Positions 57,977-64,000 of a stretch of 64,000 bases of DNA are shown one piece after another. Numbering within the stretch: position 1 is the stretch's first letter; the number at the start of each line of letters is the position of its first letter. The DNA is taken from NCBI RefSeq assembly GCF_000737315.1, contig NZ_JMCB01000002.1, forward strand, positions 124,001-188,000. The letters run 5' to 3'. A program made the translations under genes and the position numbers. Source of the stretch: Hyalangium minutum. Its GTDB lineage: Bacteria; Myxococcota; Myxococcia; Myxococcales; Myxococcaceae. The notes below the pieces were generated by a model. That model did not search any database. It saw only the letters and a list, made by a program, of their open reading frames with translations, and had not been told where the DNA came from.

Positions 57977-58049
57977 GCCCAGGTAGCTCAGTCGGTAGAG
58001 CAGGGGACTGAAAATCCCCGTGTCGGTGGTTCGATTCCGCCCCTGGGCA
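57977..58049 (+). tRNA. tRNA-Phe: tRNA-Phe (GAA); CCA end not encoded
   Basis: Acceptor GCCCAGG/CCTGGGC, D-arm AGCTCAGTCGGTAGAGC, anticodon stem GGGGA-CTGAAAA-TCCCC, T-loop GGTTCGATTCC. Confidence 0.97.
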
Positions 58050-58069
58050 CAAGAAGCTGAAGAAATTTC

Positions 58070-58105
58070 AGGGCCTTGAACTTCGGTTCAAGGCCCTTCT
58101 TTTTT
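58070..58105 (+). terminator. Rho-independent terminator (possibly bidirectional)
   Basis: 12-bp perfect stem AGGGCCTTGAAC-TTCG-GTTCAAGGCCCT followed by TCTTTTTT. Confidence 0.88.
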
Positions 58106-58400: not shown

Positions 58401-59561
58401 TCAGGGGCTCCCGGCGCTCGCCAGCGCGCCTACGTCGAGCAGCTTGCGGATCCGCGCATTCGACAAGTCCAGCGCGGCCCGTGCGGAAGGGCGCTCAACG
58501 GCTGCGCGGAACACGTCAGCTGCCTCCTGGTCGAGCATGAGGCAGCTGTGGCGGGCCTTGTCGAGCAGGACCGGCTGCTCCCCATACACCAGCAGCGCGA
58601 ACCGGCCGGTATCGGCGCGCAGCTCCGCGGCGCCCTCCTCGACCGTCCGCGCGGCGGGACGCACATCCGTGTTTCGCTGGAGATAGCGCTCGACGTAAAG
58701 CCAGCCTTCCCACTGCCCCAGCGCATCGGCCACGGACTGTTCCAGCAGGCGGTACAGCGCCTGGGTTGTGCTGGCGGCGTACTGCTCACGATCGTCTCCG
58801 GACGGGACAATCGGCGGATGAAAGGTCAGCGACAGGGAATGATCGGCGTCGCGCCGGCACACCACGGGCACCACGGGTACGCCTGAGAGGTGGCTCAGAT
58901 AGGCGATTCCAGCACGCGCCATGAGCTGCTGGCCGAAGAACTCCACGGGCACCATGCTGCCGTTGTCCTTGTTGTTACCGACTCCCGCGTTGCCGTCGAT
59001 GTAGAGGACGAGCGACGCGCCGCGCCTGAGGGCACGCAGGCCGAACAGGAGGCTGTTGCGGTCTTGGGCGTTGACCGTGCGGAGCGTGCCCGTCCAGCCC
59101 CGGGCCCGCGCGGCATCCTGCACCCCCTCGAGGATGTCCTGCCCCTGCTTGTTCAGCGTATTCCCAGCCAGGAACAACACGCAGTCGGTTCCGGCGCGCA
59201 TCAGGAAGTGGAACAAGTGCCGATACGAACCCGCGTGGTAGGTGCAGAAGATGTGGCTGCCCGCCGTCCGTCCGTCCAAGAAGATGCCAGCCAGATCACG
59301 CAGGCGCGTCGTCTGCACCAGGTCGTATTGCTTCTGGTCGAGCACCGCCATGCGCTGCTGGAAGATCACCTCCGCGATGACCGCCTCCCGGCGCTCGCGC
59401 GGCAGCCGCGGGAAGAAGTAACGCAGGTTGGCGTCGCACAGGTGGTAGGCATTGTTGAACGCATCGGACTGGCGCGGCGCACTGACGACACCGTCCAAGG
59501 CGCGGCGCAGCGCCACGATGAGCTCGTCTGCCTTGCGAGCATAGTGTGCGTCCACGCTCAT
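58401..59561 (-). CDS. LpxL/LPLAT-like acyltransferase with C-terminal RRE/PqqD-like extension
   Basis: TYHAGSY, LVLYIDGN, VEFFG, GIAYLSHLSGVPVVP, QWEGW parallel LpxL blocks; ATGA overlap with the upstream gene fixes the start at 59561. Confidence 0.8.
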   Translation of the reverse strand: MSVDAHYARKADELIVALRRALDGVVSAPRQSDAFNNAYHLCDANLRYFFPRLPRERREAVIAEVIFQQRMAVLDQKQYDLVQTTRLRDLAGIFLDGRTAGSHIFCTYHAGSYRHLFHFLMRAGTDCVLFLAGNTLNKQGQDILEGVQDAARARGWTGTLRTVNAQDRNSLLFGLRALRRGASLVLYIDGNAGVGNNKDNGSMVPVEFFGQQLMARAGIAYLSHLSGVPVVPVVCRRDADHSLSLTFHPPIVPSGDDREQYAASTTQALYRLLEQSVADALGQWEGWLYVERYLQRNTDVRPAARTVEEGAAELRADTGRFALLVYGEQPVLLDKARHSCLMLDQEAADVFRAAVERPSARAALDLSNARIRKLLDVGALASAGSP

Positions 59562-60862
59562 GCGGACATCCCCTGAGAGTTGGAGGCGGCACGTGCCGGG
59601 GGAGCGATGAGCGCCTGCCGCACGAGCCGCACGCCCCGTCCCAGCGTGGACAGAACCACCATCGCCGAGAACAGCATGCCGGCCAGGTACGCCAGCACCA
59701 TCACCACGCTCCCGGAGACAGCGACAAGCGCCTCGAGCGGCTCCGTGCTCGCAAACCGGGCCAGGACGGCGCCCAGCAGCTGCGGCAACGACGTCACAAG
59801 GACCCAGGTGGTGCGCGCGGCGAACACCGCGAAGGTGGCGAAGAACACAGTGGACGCCAGCGCATAGACGGCCAGCGCCACCCGGGAGCCCGCGAGGGGC
59901 GGCGGTCCCTTGTCCCGGCGTCCCATCACGAGGGAGGCCGCGCGTGTCAGCACGTTCGCGCCCCAGGCACGCGCCTGGTCGCGCAGGTTGGGCAGGCGGA
60001 ACAGGTCGGAGTAGACCCAATAGCCATCGAAACGGAAGAACGGATTGAGCGTCACGAAGAGTGTGGTCAAGCTGGCGCCCATGAAGGCGGCAATTGCAGC
60101 GCTCTGGGTTGCCAGTTGCACGGGCGCCGCCAGCGCCGTGACGATCAGCTGGAAATAGACCCCGCCGAGGTTGACACGCATCCGGCCTGCGCGCGGCAGC
60201 CGCCACGCCTCGGTGACATTGCAAAACAGCACGGGGAAGACCAGATACAGACCGATTCCAATTTCGGCGGGCTCGGCGCCGGAGTAGCGCGAGGCCGCCG
60301 CGTGCCCGAGCTCATGGAACGCGAGCGCGCTGAACAGCAGGACGTAGAACAGCAGGGCGTCGCCCAGCGTCATGTTGAAGGTGGTGACCGCTACGCGCAC
60401 GCTGCTGAGCTGGTAAGGCGTGGCCAGCAACCACCCGCCCAGCAGCACGGCGCACGCCAGCAGCGTCGTGATGAGCGCTCGCGGCGCGAACAGGAAGGTG
60501 AACGGGGAACAGGCGCGCGCCACGGTCTCAGGACCGGCCAACTGCCGCGCGAAGAACACGTAGGGAGAGTGGTTGCTGGCCGCTGGCGCGGCTTTCTTGT
60601 CGGTGGAGACTAACCCCGCGGGTATCAACTGGGTTTCAATGACCGAGCGCACCTGCTCGGCGGTGAACTTCACGTCGCCTTCATTCAAGCGCGCCACGAT
60701 CGCGTCGAGCGACGACTCGCGCTCCAGACACTCGAGCAGCCGCGCCAGCCTTTCGGAGCCATGAAAGGCGCGGCGCCCGACGAAAATGCAGTACCGGCGG
60801 CCGCTCTGCGGATCATCCGTCTTGGACAAAGACAGTGCGTCGGTCAGGTAGTATCGATCCAA
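59558..60862 (-). CDS. M50 (site-2 protease) membrane metalloprotease with N-terminal RRE/PqqD-like domain; TTG start probable
   Basis: HELGH zinc motif, GLYLVFPVLFCNVTEAW, LNPFFRFDGY third-ligand motif, multiple TMs. Confidence 0.82.
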   Translation of the reverse strand: MDRYYLTDALSLSKTDDPQSGRRYCIFVGRRAFHGSERLARLLECLERESSLDAIVARLNEGDVKFTAEQVRSVIETQLIPAGLVSTDKKAAPAASNHSPYVFFARQLAGPETVARACSPFTFLFAPRALITTLLACAVLLGGWLLATPYQLSSVRVAVTTFNMTLGDALLFYVLLFSALAFHELGHAAASRYSGAEPAEIGIGLYLVFPVLFCNVTEAWRLPRAGRMRVNLGGVYFQLIVTALAAPVQLATQSAAIAAFMGASLTTLFVTLNPFFRFDGYWVYSDLFRLPNLRDQARAWGANVLTRAASLVMGRRDKGPPPLAGSRVALAVYALASTVFFATFAVFAARTTWVLVTSLPQLLGAVLARFASTEPLEALVAVSGSVVMVLAYLAGMLFSAMVVLSTLGRGVRLVRQALIAPPARAASNSQGMSA

Positions 60863-61218: not shown

Positions 61219-61812
61219 ATGGACCTGAAGGCCGTCATCGCGCTCGAGCGGGCAGGCATGGACCCGGCTCACCCGGAGCGCCTGTGGGTGCCCACCGCGC
61301 TCGGCGAGCAGGGCCGGGTGGTGCCCCTGGACCAGGACCTGCCTGTCCCCGTCATGGACGACGGACACCGCGTGGTCTGGCTTCCTCTCGAGCCGTTCTC
61401 CCGGCTCTGGACGGGCTCGGCGGTGGCCCCGGCTCTCTCCCGCGCCTCCCCGCCCGAGTACGAGCCCTTCTTCATCCTCCTTGAGGCCACGGCCGCCGAG
61501 TACTGCGATGCCACCGGTCGTCCCGAGCGCGACAGGGAGTTCGAGCGCCTCTACCGGCAGCTGCGTCGTCGGCCGGACGGCGTGGATCCCAACCCCTTGT
61601 TTTCCTACCTGCGCGCCGCGGCCCGGCTCTACCTCTCCCTGCGGGATGTGAGCCGCGCCGAGTTCGAGTCTGTGGCCGACCGCCTGCGCCTCTCGGCCAG
61701 GACCTTCAGCACCCGGATCGACAGCACCAACTACCACCACTTCGTGCTCGAGGAGTTCTTCCACCCCACGGGACCGCTCCTCACCACGGGCTGGTCGGGA
61801 GGGCTCTCATGA
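61219..61812 (+). CDS. Hypothetical protein
   Basis: Clean ORF with ATGA overlap to the next gene. Confidence 0.65.
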   Translation: MDLKAVIALERAGMDPAHPERLWVPTALGEQGRVVPLDQDLPVPVMDDGHRVVWLPLEPFSRLWTGSAVAPALSRASPPEYEPFFILLEATAAEYCDATGRPERDREFERLYRQLRRRPDGVDPNPLFSYLRAAARLYLSLRDVSRAEFESVADRLRLSARTFSTRIDSTNYHHFVLEEFFHPTGPLLTTGWSGGLS

Positions 61813-62882
61813 GCGAGTACCAGTATTACGAGTTCCGGGCCGTGGACCGGCCGCTCACCCAGCGGGAGCGGGCCGAGCTTCGTGCACTCTCTACCCGCGC
61901 CAACATCTCCGCGTACCACTTCTCCAACGTCTATCACTGGGGCAGTTTCAAGGGCTCCCCGGACGAGATGGTGGAGCGCTACTTCGATGCCCACCTCTAT
62001 GTGGCGAACTGGGGCGAGCGCCGGCTCGTGCTCCGTCTTCCTGCCCGGCGCTTCGACCTGCAGCGCGCCAGGCCCTACCAGGAAGGCCGCCGCACCGCGG
62101 TGCAGAGGAAGGGCGACCACGTCATGCTTCGCTTCGAGCTCGACGAAGCCTGGTCCGAGGACGTCCAGGGGGAAGGGTGGCTCACCTCCCTCCTGCCCCT
62201 TCGCGAGGAGCTTCTCTCGGGAGATCTGCGCTCGCTCTATCTCGGGTGGCTGGCACAGGCCGCGCTGGGGCAGTTGAGTGCGGACGACGAGGAGCCGCCC
62301 GTTCCCCCAGGGCTAGGCTCCCTCTCCTCAGCGCTCACCGCGCTCGCGGACTTCCTGCTCATCCCTCCCGAGCTGTTGGAGGTGGCCGCTCGGACCAGTG
62401 CCGCTGAAAAGCCGGTGCCGCGCGAGGAGTTGGAGACGTGGGTTCAGGCGCTACCCGCGCTGGAAAAGGATGCCCTGCTGGTGCGGTTGATCGACAAGGC
62501 CGGGGTGGCCCCTGGCCGAGTCGCGGAGAAGGCCATTCCTCCCCGGAGGCTGGTGGGCGCACTGCTCCGGGAAGCCGTAGCGCTCCAAAAAGCCAAGGAG
62601 CGGCGGGAACAGGAGCGCCAGGTCGCGGCTCGGGAGAAGGAACTCGAGGCGCTCGCGGCCCAGGGCTCCGCTGCTTGGGGGCGGGTGGATCAGCTCTTCT
62701 CCAGCCGTCGCCCCACGGATCATGCGGCCGGTGTGAGGCTCCTCGTGGACCTGAGAGAGGTCGCGCGCCGGAAGGGGACGGAGGACGCGTTCTCCCGCCG
62801 CTTGGGCCAGCTCCGCGAGCGCAATGCCCGAAGAGCCGGGCTGATCTCCCGCATGGACAAGGAAGGCCTGCACGCACCCTGA
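61809..62882 (+). CDS. Conserved hypothetical protein (MSEYQYYEF... family, usually near SWIM/helicase genes)
   Basis: MSEYQYYEFRAVDRPLT, YFDAHLYVANWG, GDLRSLYLGWL motifs recalled from this family. Confidence 0.7.
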   Translation: MSEYQYYEFRAVDRPLTQRERAELRALSTRANISAYHFSNVYHWGSFKGSPDEMVERYFDAHLYVANWGERRLVLRLPARRFDLQRARPYQEGRRTAVQRKGDHVMLRFELDEAWSEDVQGEGWLTSLLPLREELLSGDLRSLYLGWLAQAALGQLSADDEEPPVPPGLGSLSSALTALADFLLIPPELLEVAARTSAAEKPVPREELETWVQALPALEKDALLVRLIDKAGVAPGRVAEKAIPPRRLVGALLREAVALQKAKERREQERQVAAREKELEALAAQGSAAWGRVDQLFSSRRPTDHAAGVRLLVDLREVARRKGTEDAFSRRLGQLRERNARRAGLISRMDKEGLHAP

Positions 62883-62903
62883 ACTCCCGCCTCGCCTGAA
62901 CGT

Positions 62904-64000
62904 ATGGCTCCTCCAGAGACCGAAACCCATCCCGAATCTTCTTCCCGCCGCGCAGCTCCTCAGCCGCTGGAGCCTCTGCGGAGGTGGCTCACCCGCGACG
63001 CGCTTTATGAGATAGCGGGCCCGCGGATGTACCGCCAGGGCCAGGCATGCCTGGCCCAGCACCGCGTGACTTCCTTCGAGGCACTACCCGACGTCCTCAC
63101 GGGGCAGGTGCTCAACCGCCGGGGACATCCCTACCCAGTCACCATCGGCACGGATGCGGATGGTTTCTCGGCGGAGTGCGAGTGCGAGCCCTTCTGGAAC
63201 GAGGGCTTCTGCAAGCATGCTGTCGCGCTGGGGCTGGCCTTTCTCCAAGCGGGGGGGGCCGTCTCGGAGCGGGCCCGGCCGCCGACCCGGTCCGAGCGGC
63301 CGCAGAGCTCCGAGCACCTTCAGGAGTGGTTGGAGGAGCACCACCTCGCTCATGCCCGGCGCATCCCCCTGGCCGTGGTGGAGCCCTTCCTGGAGCGGGG
63401 CTTCAATGGCACGCCCGGTTTCTATGGACTGGCGCACCTGCCCGTCACCGCGCCCTTGGATGGGTCTCTCGATTTGCGGCGGCAGGTGTTTGGGACCCCC
63501 GCGCAGAACCTGCTGCGCGAGGCCGTCTGGGCCTGGCTGGCTGCTGAGGCCGAGCGGGTTCGCAGGGGACTCGAATCCGAACAGGAGCGCGCCGCGGCGC
63601 CTCGTCCACCGCCCACCGATGTGCGGCTGATTCCCTGGAGAGAGGCGCTCGAGAGAGCCAGGGCGCGGGTGCGAGAGCAGGCCGTGCCTCGCCTGCTGCC
63701 GGGCAAGCCCGACATCACGATGCAAGAGCGCCCCTTGCTCCTCTTCATCGAGGAGCCGGGCAGTCCCTCTGCCGTCTTCGCGGGGAAGGACAGCTGGACG
63801 GGGATGATACGCGTGCGCGTGTCCGTGGATCCTCGCGCGCTGCTCGAGGAGCGGGGAGGGTTGTCCTGCTGGTGCACACCTGGAGGAGAAGCTCGCTGCG
63901 TCCATGTCCTCTCCGCACTTGATGCGTTGCTGGACATGCAGGGGGAGTCGCTCTGGGCCTCGTTCAACTCGAGGCTCGCGGAGCTGCTCTTCGAGCTGCC
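62904..64000 (+). CDS. Tandem SWIM zinc-finger protein, probably the N-terminus of an SNF2 helicase (3' truncated)
   Basis: Frame open to the window end; CECEPFWNEGFCKH and CWCTPGGEARCVH SWIM motifs. The helicase part is not in the window. Confidence 0.75.
   Translation, partial: MAPPETETHPESSSRRAAPQPLEPLRRWLTRDALYEIAGPRMYRQGQACLAQHRVTSFEALPDVLTGQVLNRRGHPYPVTIGTDADGFSAECECEPFWNEGFCKHAVALGLAFLQAGGAVSERARPPTRSERPQSSEHLQEWLEEHHLAHARRIPLAVVEPFLERGFNGTPGFYGLAHLPVTAPLDGSLDLRRQVFGTPAQNLLREAVWAWLAAEAERVRRGLESEQERAAAPRPPPTDVRLIPWREALERARARVREQAVPRLLPGKPDITMQERPLLLFIEEPGSPSAVFAGKDSWTGMIRVRVSVDPRALLEERGGLSCWCTPGGEARCVHVLSALDALLDMQGESLWASFNSRLAELLFEL

Follow-up and report, generated by a model that had tools for sequence, protein, structure and literature searches.

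Every known lipidation of peptides that are made by ribosomes and modified after translation (RiPPs) listed in a paper of October 2026, namely those of selidamides, lipolanthines, goadvionins, lipoavitides and aphotorhaptins, is carried out by GNAT acyltransferases (PMC13647313). Here, we describe a gene for a different type of acyltransferase in a stretch of 64,000 nucleotides from Hyalangium minutum (contig NZ_JMCB01000002.1, positions 124,001 to 188,000 of the forward strand), referred to below as the window. Its product (the enzyme) is predicted to combine an acyltransferase domain of the LPLAT superfamily, similar to the lipid A acyltransferases LpxL and LpxM, with a C-terminal tail resembling a RiPP recognition element (RRE), and its gene lies between those of a protease and of a candidate precursor peptide. 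With a probability of roughly 0.6, we regard the enzyme as an acyltransferase that is guided by a leader and attaches a lipid to a ribosomal peptide, that is, as a soluble or peripheral member of the LPLAT superfamily recruited into a RiPP pathway. A description of an LPLAT/LpxL-type enzyme in a RiPP pathway was not found in the literature searched, an absence that is not proof.

Two described LPLAT enzymes are relevant to the active site. In PatA, the mycobacterial acyltransferase of phosphatidylinositol mannosides, His126 serves as general base, and the residue that tunes it is Glu200 and not an acid five positions further on (+5) (PMC8519569). VexE, the beta-hydroxyacyltransferase of the Vi antigen, carries a tyrosine at +5, is active, and needs His466 as well as Asp532, which corresponds to PatA Glu200 (PMC9597891). 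Among the RiPPs, selidamides are modified by the GNATs KspN and PhaN together with peptide arginases, following an order in which arginine is converted to ornithine (Orn) and then acylated (PMC13647313).

Catalytic domain and active site

The open reading frame (ORF) of the enzyme, as called mechanically, extends further upstream; the start was placed at the ATG at 59561, because this codon overlaps the stop of the upstream protease gene (ATGA) and because the homologues all start there, with relatives aligning from residue 1. The window has a G+C content of about 69%. The closest relatives of the enzyme were found in Archangium violaceum (83% identity) and Cystobacter fuscus (82%), among 33 close homologues. 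A search of 1.84 billion representative proteins with a hidden Markov model (HMM) of the enzyme family returned 2318 matches with E<=1e-3. Of these, 893 reached E<=1e-10 and 405 reached E<=1e-30, so that at the last threshold the family comprises no fewer than 405 clusters, formed at 50% identity. Most of the best 150 matches are about 380 amino acids long. The conservation counts given below refer to 173 aligned family representatives from this unbiased search.

Pfam PF03279 (Lip_A_acyltrans) covered only residues 175-284 of the enzyme (E 1.6e-11, 44.4 bits against a gathering cut-off of 22.3 bits), and all NCBIfam equivalogs for lipid A acyltransferases scored far under their cut-offs (best 29.6 bits vs 384). 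Sequence searches of the PDB with the whole protein or the family profile gave nothing useful. Profile-profile alignment with E. coli LpxL/LpxM by hhalign extended over residues 41-302 (probability 98.3%, E 2e-14). The AlphaFold2 (AF2) model of the full-length enzyme (pLDDT 85.8, pTM 0.86) matched Acinetobacter baumannii LpxM (5kn7, E 4.6e-11) and Mycobacterium smegmatis PatA (5f2z, TM-score 0.72 normalized by the target) in Foldseek, with a probability of 1.0. By model and profile, the window protein thus has the LpxL/LpxM/PatA (LPLAT) fold.

Compared with LpxL, LpxM and LpxP (PF03279; 5KN7), the enzyme shares the fold, aligns in the catalytic histidine and in the aspartate of the PDxD type, and fits the Pfam family in its C-terminal half. 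It differs from them in the missing N-terminal transmembrane anchor, in an arginine replacing the +5 glutamate, in an added RRE-like tail of about 85 amino acids, and in a gene context that is a RiPP cassette and not a set of lipid A genes. The maximum hydropathy over 19 residues within the first 60 residues was 0.71, as opposed to 1.56 in E. coli LpxL. The transmembrane segment of LpxL has no counterpart, since the hhalign alignment starts past it, and residues 1-40 of the enzyme form a polar helix.

In the HAGSYR motif of the enzyme, His109 aligned to LpxL His132 and Arg114 to LpxL Glu137. His109 was retained in all 173 relatives. Position 114 (59220-59222) was arginine in 161 and lysine in 6 of the 173, and in none of them aspartate or glutamate. 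Ser112 was present in 163/173 and Tyr113 in 161/173 sequences, Arg216 was also near-invariant, and Gly190 and Gly218 were invariant (173/173). Judging by the alignment, H-x-G-S-Y-R is the signature of a large, distinct LPLAT subfamily, as the motif is conserved over the 173 family members. In databases, the relatives are named lauroyl/myristoyl acyltransferases; the names "lauroyl/myristoyl acyltransferase" and "KDO2-lipid IV(A) lauroyltransferase" are probably wrong for them.

The acidic partner of the histidine appears to lie elsewhere. Asp189, within an IDGN motif, aligned to the first aspartate of the LpxL PDHD motif, and the same LpxL column aligned to PatA Glu200. Because Asp189 is the equivalent of PatA Glu200 and VexE Asp532 and is invariant (173/173), it probably pairs with His109, which would leave the working dyad intact. 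The invariance of His109, Asp189, Gly190 and Gly218 likewise argues for a working active site. With PatA, the enzyme has in common the LPLAT fold and a histidine with a distal acid (Glu200 corresponding to Asp189); with VexE, it shares the absence of an acid at +5, the distal aspartate (Asp532 corresponding to Asp189) and the fusion of the LPLAT domain to a domain that handles the substrate, which in VexE consists of TPR repeats. The acceptors of PatA and VexE are hydroxyls of a glycolipid or a nucleotide sugar and not peptides, neither enzyme has an RRE-type domain, and Arg164 of PatA is not conserved in the window family.

Residue 161 (59079-59081) aligned to this canonical arginine (PatA Arg164, the arginine of GRLR in LpxL). 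Glutamate or aspartate occupied the position in 74 of the 173 sequences, and arginine or lysine in only 31. Arg114 and an acidic position 161 together look like a reversed Glu-Arg salt bridge, in a region where the alignment is weakly conserved. Arg114 would probably serve in donor binding in place of the Glu-Arg pair known from LpxM and PatA, with the catalytic base unchanged. Cys106 (CTYH) was considered as a catalytic nucleophile and ruled out, as alanine, valine, threonine, serine or leucine is found there in 22/173 relatives.

A first-pass annotation of the window had described an LpxL-type protein with His-x4-Arg in place of His-x4-Asp/Glu and no N-terminal transmembrane anchor. Both observations hold: the former agrees with the hhalign and Foldseek results and with Arg or Lys at position 114 in 167/173 relatives, the latter with the hydropathy values. 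Its further idea of a nucleophile that does not need an acidic partner finds no support, given that the +5 acid is not the relay partner in this superfamily and that Asp189 is invariant.

The C-terminal tail

Residues 313-382 were modelled by AF2 as four short strands followed by helices, in the full-length protein as well as in the isolated tail (pLDDT 84.2). When the tail alone was compared with the PDB in Foldseek, the top match was TbiB1 in complex with the TbiA leader (E 0.014, probability 1.0, TM-scores 0.59/0.57), and it spanned the whole 88-residue target. It was followed by the lasso peptide protein B1 (6jx3), ThcOx, CteB, SuiB and McbB, each of them an RRE-bearing RiPP protein, with the winged-helix domain of NO66 interleaved. 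The closest structures thus belong to RRE proteins determined together with their leaders. This enrichment is meaningful because RRE-bearing proteins are a tiny fraction of the 350,000 chains. Most of the tail was retained in 157/173 relatives, with F321, L332, K335 and L374 conserved.

As in the RRE domains of TbiB1, lasso B1, CteB, SuiB and McbB, three strands precede helices in the tail, which is fused to an enzyme in RiPP context that is encoded beside a precursor gene. It departs from these domains in its lack of similarity to PF05402, a second helix that is very short in the model, and an extra N-terminal strand. A search of the tail against NCBIfam sequence models gave nothing. A match of the tail profile to designed armadillo repeats was judged to be a spurious sum over alanine-rich repeats. 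The models therefore support an RRE-like tail at the level of the fold. The RRE pattern that the first-pass annotation had read into the tail was borne out in this respect, by AF2 and by TbiB1 as the top Foldseek match, but not by sequence, where no PqqD/RRE profile matched.

Two further segments resemble RREs by pattern only, with the order strand-strand-helix: the N-terminal part of about 95 amino acids of the HExxH protease (window 60578-60862, minus strand), and N-terminal extensions of about 115 amino acids in arginases of related loci (L009 4639-4983; L043 4540-4884). No similarity between the enzyme tail and the N-terminal domains of the protease and the arginases was detected by hhalign.

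Precursor genes in the window and in related loci

The 57-residue candidate precursor reads MAAKKPVSVATDELMEEFQLTELESRLEMSATLGTEVSELDICCECINVPSLCEPNY and was divided into the leader FQLTELESRLEM and the core ICCECINVPSLC. The core contains cysteine and neither lysine nor arginine, and the window cassette does not include an arginase. Precursors had no match in Pfam or NCBIfam.

The protease gene ends in a stop codon that overlaps the enzyme start, and its own TTG start was set by alignment with homologues. The protease matched the NCBIfam model daptide_HExxH (NF041824) near full length (E 1.8e-34), with 119.5 bits under the 300-bit cut-off. It also matched RiPP_HExxH_LiaK (YydH/LiaK; 1.7e-10) and, weakly, Pfam M50, and six or seven transmembrane-like segments were recognized. 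In daptide pathways, an oxidative decarboxylase, an aminotransferase and a methyltransferase are encoded beside the HExxH protease. The window protease is thus similar to the daptide protease in its extent, its HELGH motif and its multiple transmembrane segments; it differs in the score, and none of the three cassette genes is a daptide tailoring gene.

In total, 61 loci were compared, comprising the window, 56 loci from two collections and four from contig look-ups (locus L002 holds the same cassette as L001). Short precursor genes containing cysteine, with CC, CCxC..C, RC or KC cores, were found beside the enzyme gene in 57 of them, in three phyla. The feature common to the cores of all precursor types is a cysteine preceded by Cys, Arg or Lys. 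The proposal of the first-pass annotation that the enzyme was retargeted from lipids to peptides is strongly supported by this context, that is, by the precursor, the overlapping protease gene and the 57 loci; peptide acylation itself we infer.

In the window clade (L001, L003, L004, L059-L062; Cystobacter, Oxalobacteraceae, Tahibacter and metagenomes), precursor, protease and enzyme always occur together, and the precursors are homologues whose leader has the pattern EF.L.ELE.RLEM and whose core has the pattern CCxC..C. Within this clade, the trio was seen in 8 distinct loci, the flanks of which are unrelated. More precisely, the leaders follow EF(Q/R/K)L.ELE.RLEM, and in 11 of 12 precursors an aromatic or aliphatic residue is followed by CCxC, with the fourth cysteine 2-6 residues on. 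Genes for a MerR-type regulator, a P-type ATPase with HMA domain and an HMA protein adjoin the cassette in L062 (7976-10925), and a multicopper oxidase gene in L060 (10339-11158). These copper-gene neighbours could hint that the CCxC..C peptides bind metal, or could be coincidence. In Cystobacter fuscus (L003 4701-5903), a gap of about 100 nt separates the end of the protease ORF from the enzyme gene, and the ORF falls short of that of the window by about 34 amino acids, which may reflect a frameshift or a different C-terminus.

A second group comprises L009, L019 (Arcicella), Myroides, Weeksellaceae and an alphaproteobacterial metagenome-assembled genome, with a core RC(S/N)NRCNGNDV(D/E)V conserved across phyla. 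Its loci encode a protein of the arginase family that carries an additional N-terminal domain, the enzyme, and an HExxH protease or S41 peptidase. The cores are near-identical despite unrelated leaders and are always found beside the arginase-family gene and the enzyme gene. The Myroides and Weeksellaceae loci also carry a histidine kinase and a LuxR-type regulator.

In Saprospiraceae/Chitinophagales (L021, L023, L043, L044, L053), 3-5 tandem precursors with ELExR-type leaders and RC or KC cores are accompanied by the enzyme, genes similar to acyl carrier protein (ACP), a ketosynthase (KS) and a FabA-like dehydratase. HExxH protease and arginase are both encoded in L023, L043, L044 and L053, and neither was seen in L021, where the contig stops just past the precursors. 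L043, L044 and L053 additionally carry an acyl-AMP ligase and a gene resembling phosphopantetheinyl transferases (PPTase-like). Over all loci, KS and FabA-like dehydratase genes were found in 7, five of which also contain the acyl-AMP ligase and PPTase-like genes; at least five of the 7 have an ACP-like gene. This set implies a dedicated acyl donor.

The 38 Spirosoma-type loci contain 1-3 genes of the pattern MKKQF.IK...AK.ES.N.LKF....CC......PVFSL directly upstream of the enzyme gene. Beyond precursor(s) and enzyme, no pathway-type gene was recognized nearby, and no protease gene adjoins. Just upstream of the precursor-enzyme pair, L007 (3328-5532) and about 39 similar Spirosoma-type loci encode a membrane protein with a LytTR domain and a response regulator of the LuxR type. 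The peptides may have a role in signalling. As a functional link in Spirosoma, these regulators were discarded, since they are inseparable from the shared ancestry of syntenic loci.

Considering the leaders, an HExxH protease is encoded in all 15 loci whose precursors have the leader ELExR[L/F/Q/H/Y]E, the contig-end locus L021 aside. Genes of the peptide-arginase type lie beside RC cores in 9 loci.

In the window, the unit is a three-gene cassette of protease, enzyme and precursor, because the divergent genes next to it have no counterpart in related loci and its flanks are not syntenic with those in Cystobacter fuscus. The divergent genes (61219-64000) were considered as cassette members and excluded, as no homologue occurs in any related locus. 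They comprise three consecutive plus-strand ORFs (61219-63998) of 197, 357 and >372 amino acids, without a Pfam or NCBIfam match. The hairpin listed in Table 1 is likely a bidirectional terminator closing the cassette. In Cystobacter fuscus, the 82%-identical cassette has other flanks and no tRNA. That the tRNA-Phe gene and the hairpin adjoin the cassette here, while the Cystobacter fuscus flanks differ, suggests that the cassette moves. The G+C content at third codon positions (GC3), calculated over the exact coordinates of the cassette genes, was 0.81-0.85 vs 0.87-0.93 in neighbouring genes; being only slightly lower, it was set aside as weak evidence for a genomic island.

Table 1. Positions of the cassette features in the window and of one group of precursors in related loci
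Feature	Position	Strand	Basis or remark
LPLAT-like::RRE-like enzyme gene, 386 aa	58401..59561	-	ORF and translation, PF03279 match
LPLAT (LpxL/LpxM/PatA-type) acyltransferase domain, residues 41-302	58656..59441	-	hhalign, Foldseek
HAGSYR motif, residues 109-114; His109 predicted catalytic base, Arg114 in the place of the +5 Glu/Asp	59220..59237	-	
Asp189 of the IDGN motif, predicted to be the partner of His109 in a charge relay	58995..58997	-	alignment, invariant in 173/173
RRE-like domain at the C-terminus (residues 313-382, 70 aa) with a winged-helix fold of the PqqD type	58416..58625	-	AF2, Foldseek
Candidate precursor peptide gene, 57 aa	58195..58368	-	directly downstream of enzyme gene; GGAGG 7 nt before ATG; leader ..EEFQLTELESRLEM, core SATLGTEVSELDICCECINVPSLCEPNY
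HExxH intramembrane metalloprotease gene, 434 aa, TTG start	59558..60862	-	HELGH at 60302-60316
12-bp GC-rich hairpin between precursor gene and tRNA-Phe	58070..58097	.	
tRNA-Phe(GAA), adjoins cassette (context)	57977..58050	+	
RC(S/N)NRCNGNDV(D/E)V precursors	L009 2571-3134; L019 2150-2903; L034 4274-4558; L035 2659-2943; L016 3837-4112		

Acceptor, alternatives and meaning

Leader-guided lipidation is favoured because the LPLAT active site was kept, the membrane anchor lost and an RRE-type domain gained, and because precursor genes adjoin the enzyme gene, often together with RiPP proteases or arginases and sometimes with a fatty-acid-building set. In the proposed mechanism, the C-terminal domain would bind the leader of the precursor encoded just downstream. 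The His109-Asp189 pair would then move a fatty acyl group from acyl-ACP or acyl-coenzyme A (acyl-CoA) to a side chain in the cysteine-rich core. Within the CC motif, a cysteine thiol would be the most likely acceptor; an Orn or Lys just ahead of the conserved cysteine may take its place in relatives. Finally, the co-translated HExxH intramembrane protease would cut off the leader of the ELExRLEM type, probably at the membrane.

As in selidamide biosynthesis, this mechanism proposes side-chain fatty acylation of a leader-bearing precursor, and the nine related loci in which an arginase-family gene accompanies RC cores mirror the sequence from Arg to Orn to acylation (PMC13647313). The differences are that the window enzyme is an LPLAT and not a GNAT, that the precursor families are not the same, and that the window cassette contains no GNAT gene.

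If the acceptor is cysteine, the only universal core residue, the reaction would be an S-acylation. Alternatively, the acceptor would be the residue before the cysteine: Orn or Lys in that place would parallel the selidamides, and in the window clade the residue is itself a cysteine. It is possible, if doubtful, that RRE-guided LPLAT enzymes S-acylate the conserved cysteine and thereby found a new RiPP class. On CC cores, the acyl group would then remain as a thioester, or, on RC and KC cores, be handed on to the Orn or Lys next to the cysteine.

Several observations weigh against leader-guided lipidation. L028, L036, L050 and L055 were without a recognizable precursor in the DNA fetched. The window cassette has neither an acyl-activating gene nor an ACP, so that primary metabolism would have to supply the donor. 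The canonical arginine (PatA Arg164) is unconserved in the family, and donor binding must therefore differ from that of known enzymes. The Foldseek E-values of the tail are modest (0.014-0.09), and neither the window protein nor 20 relatives gave a match of the tail to PF05402 (PqqD/RRE) or another relevant Pfam family at E<=10. With cysteine as the sole universal core residue, the product would yet be a labile thioester, and no precedent for an S-acylated RiPP was found.

The enzyme might instead act once the leader has been cut off by the HExxH protease, and acylate the N-terminus thereby exposed on the core, not a side chain of the leader-bearing precursor. We consider this unlikely. The translational coupling of protease and enzyme genes (ATGA overlap) speaks in its favour, and known RiPP lipopeptides are more commonly lipidated at the N-terminus, once the leader is gone (PMC13647313), GNATs acting in this manner on lipolanthines, goadvionins and lipoavitides. 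However, an RRE-type domain implies leader-dependent recognition, the 38 Spirosoma-type loci have no adjoining protease, and the residues past the leader motif are unconserved, whereas the cysteine and the residue preceding it are conserved.

Improbable, too, is an inactive scaffold, in which the LPLAT domain would have become a pseudoenzyme through the Glu-to-Arg exchange and the RRE-like tail would present the leader to the protease or another enzyme. The textbook H(X)4D/E motif is indeed broken, the equivalent of PatA Arg164 is unconserved, and stand-alone RRE proteins serving proteases exist, for example lasso B1. The pattern of conservation, with four invariant residues and with Ser112, Tyr113, Arg114 and Arg216 nearly so, is nevertheless that of a live site. 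Moreover, VexE is active with a non-acidic +5 residue, and in the Spirosoma-type loci the enzyme gene is the only recognized pathway-type gene beside the precursor.

That the enzyme is an ordinary lipid or glycolipid acyltransferase, such as a paralogue of the late acyltransferases of lipid A, with small ORFs nearby by accident, is improbable as well: a PF03279 score above the gathering cut-off, the database names of the relatives, and L028 and L036, where the enzyme gene comes first in an operon of fatty-acid type that continues past the end of the locus and no precursor is visible, are outweighed by the low equivalog scores, the missing anchor, the tail fold, the homologous precursor genes flanking the enzyme in 57/61 loci, and the co-located RiPP-type proteases and peptide arginases.

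If leader-guided lipidation is correct, an LPLAT-fold enzyme fused to an RRE would give access to genetically encoded lipopeptides by a second route, independent of the GNATs. A membrane-lipid enzyme would have been turned to peptides by losing its anchor, acquiring a domain that binds leaders and reversing a Glu-Arg pair. It is a compact system, as precursor and enzyme apparently suffice in many genomes, and the dedicated fatty-acid-building genes in some lineages suggest unusual acyl groups. If cysteine is the acceptor, S-acylation would join RiPP chemistry as a bacterial ribosomal-peptide counterpart of protein S-palmitoylation. In that case, hundreds of cassettes in Bacteroidota, Myxococcota and Proteobacteria would encode lipidated cysteine-rich peptides by means of a portable two- or three-gene system.

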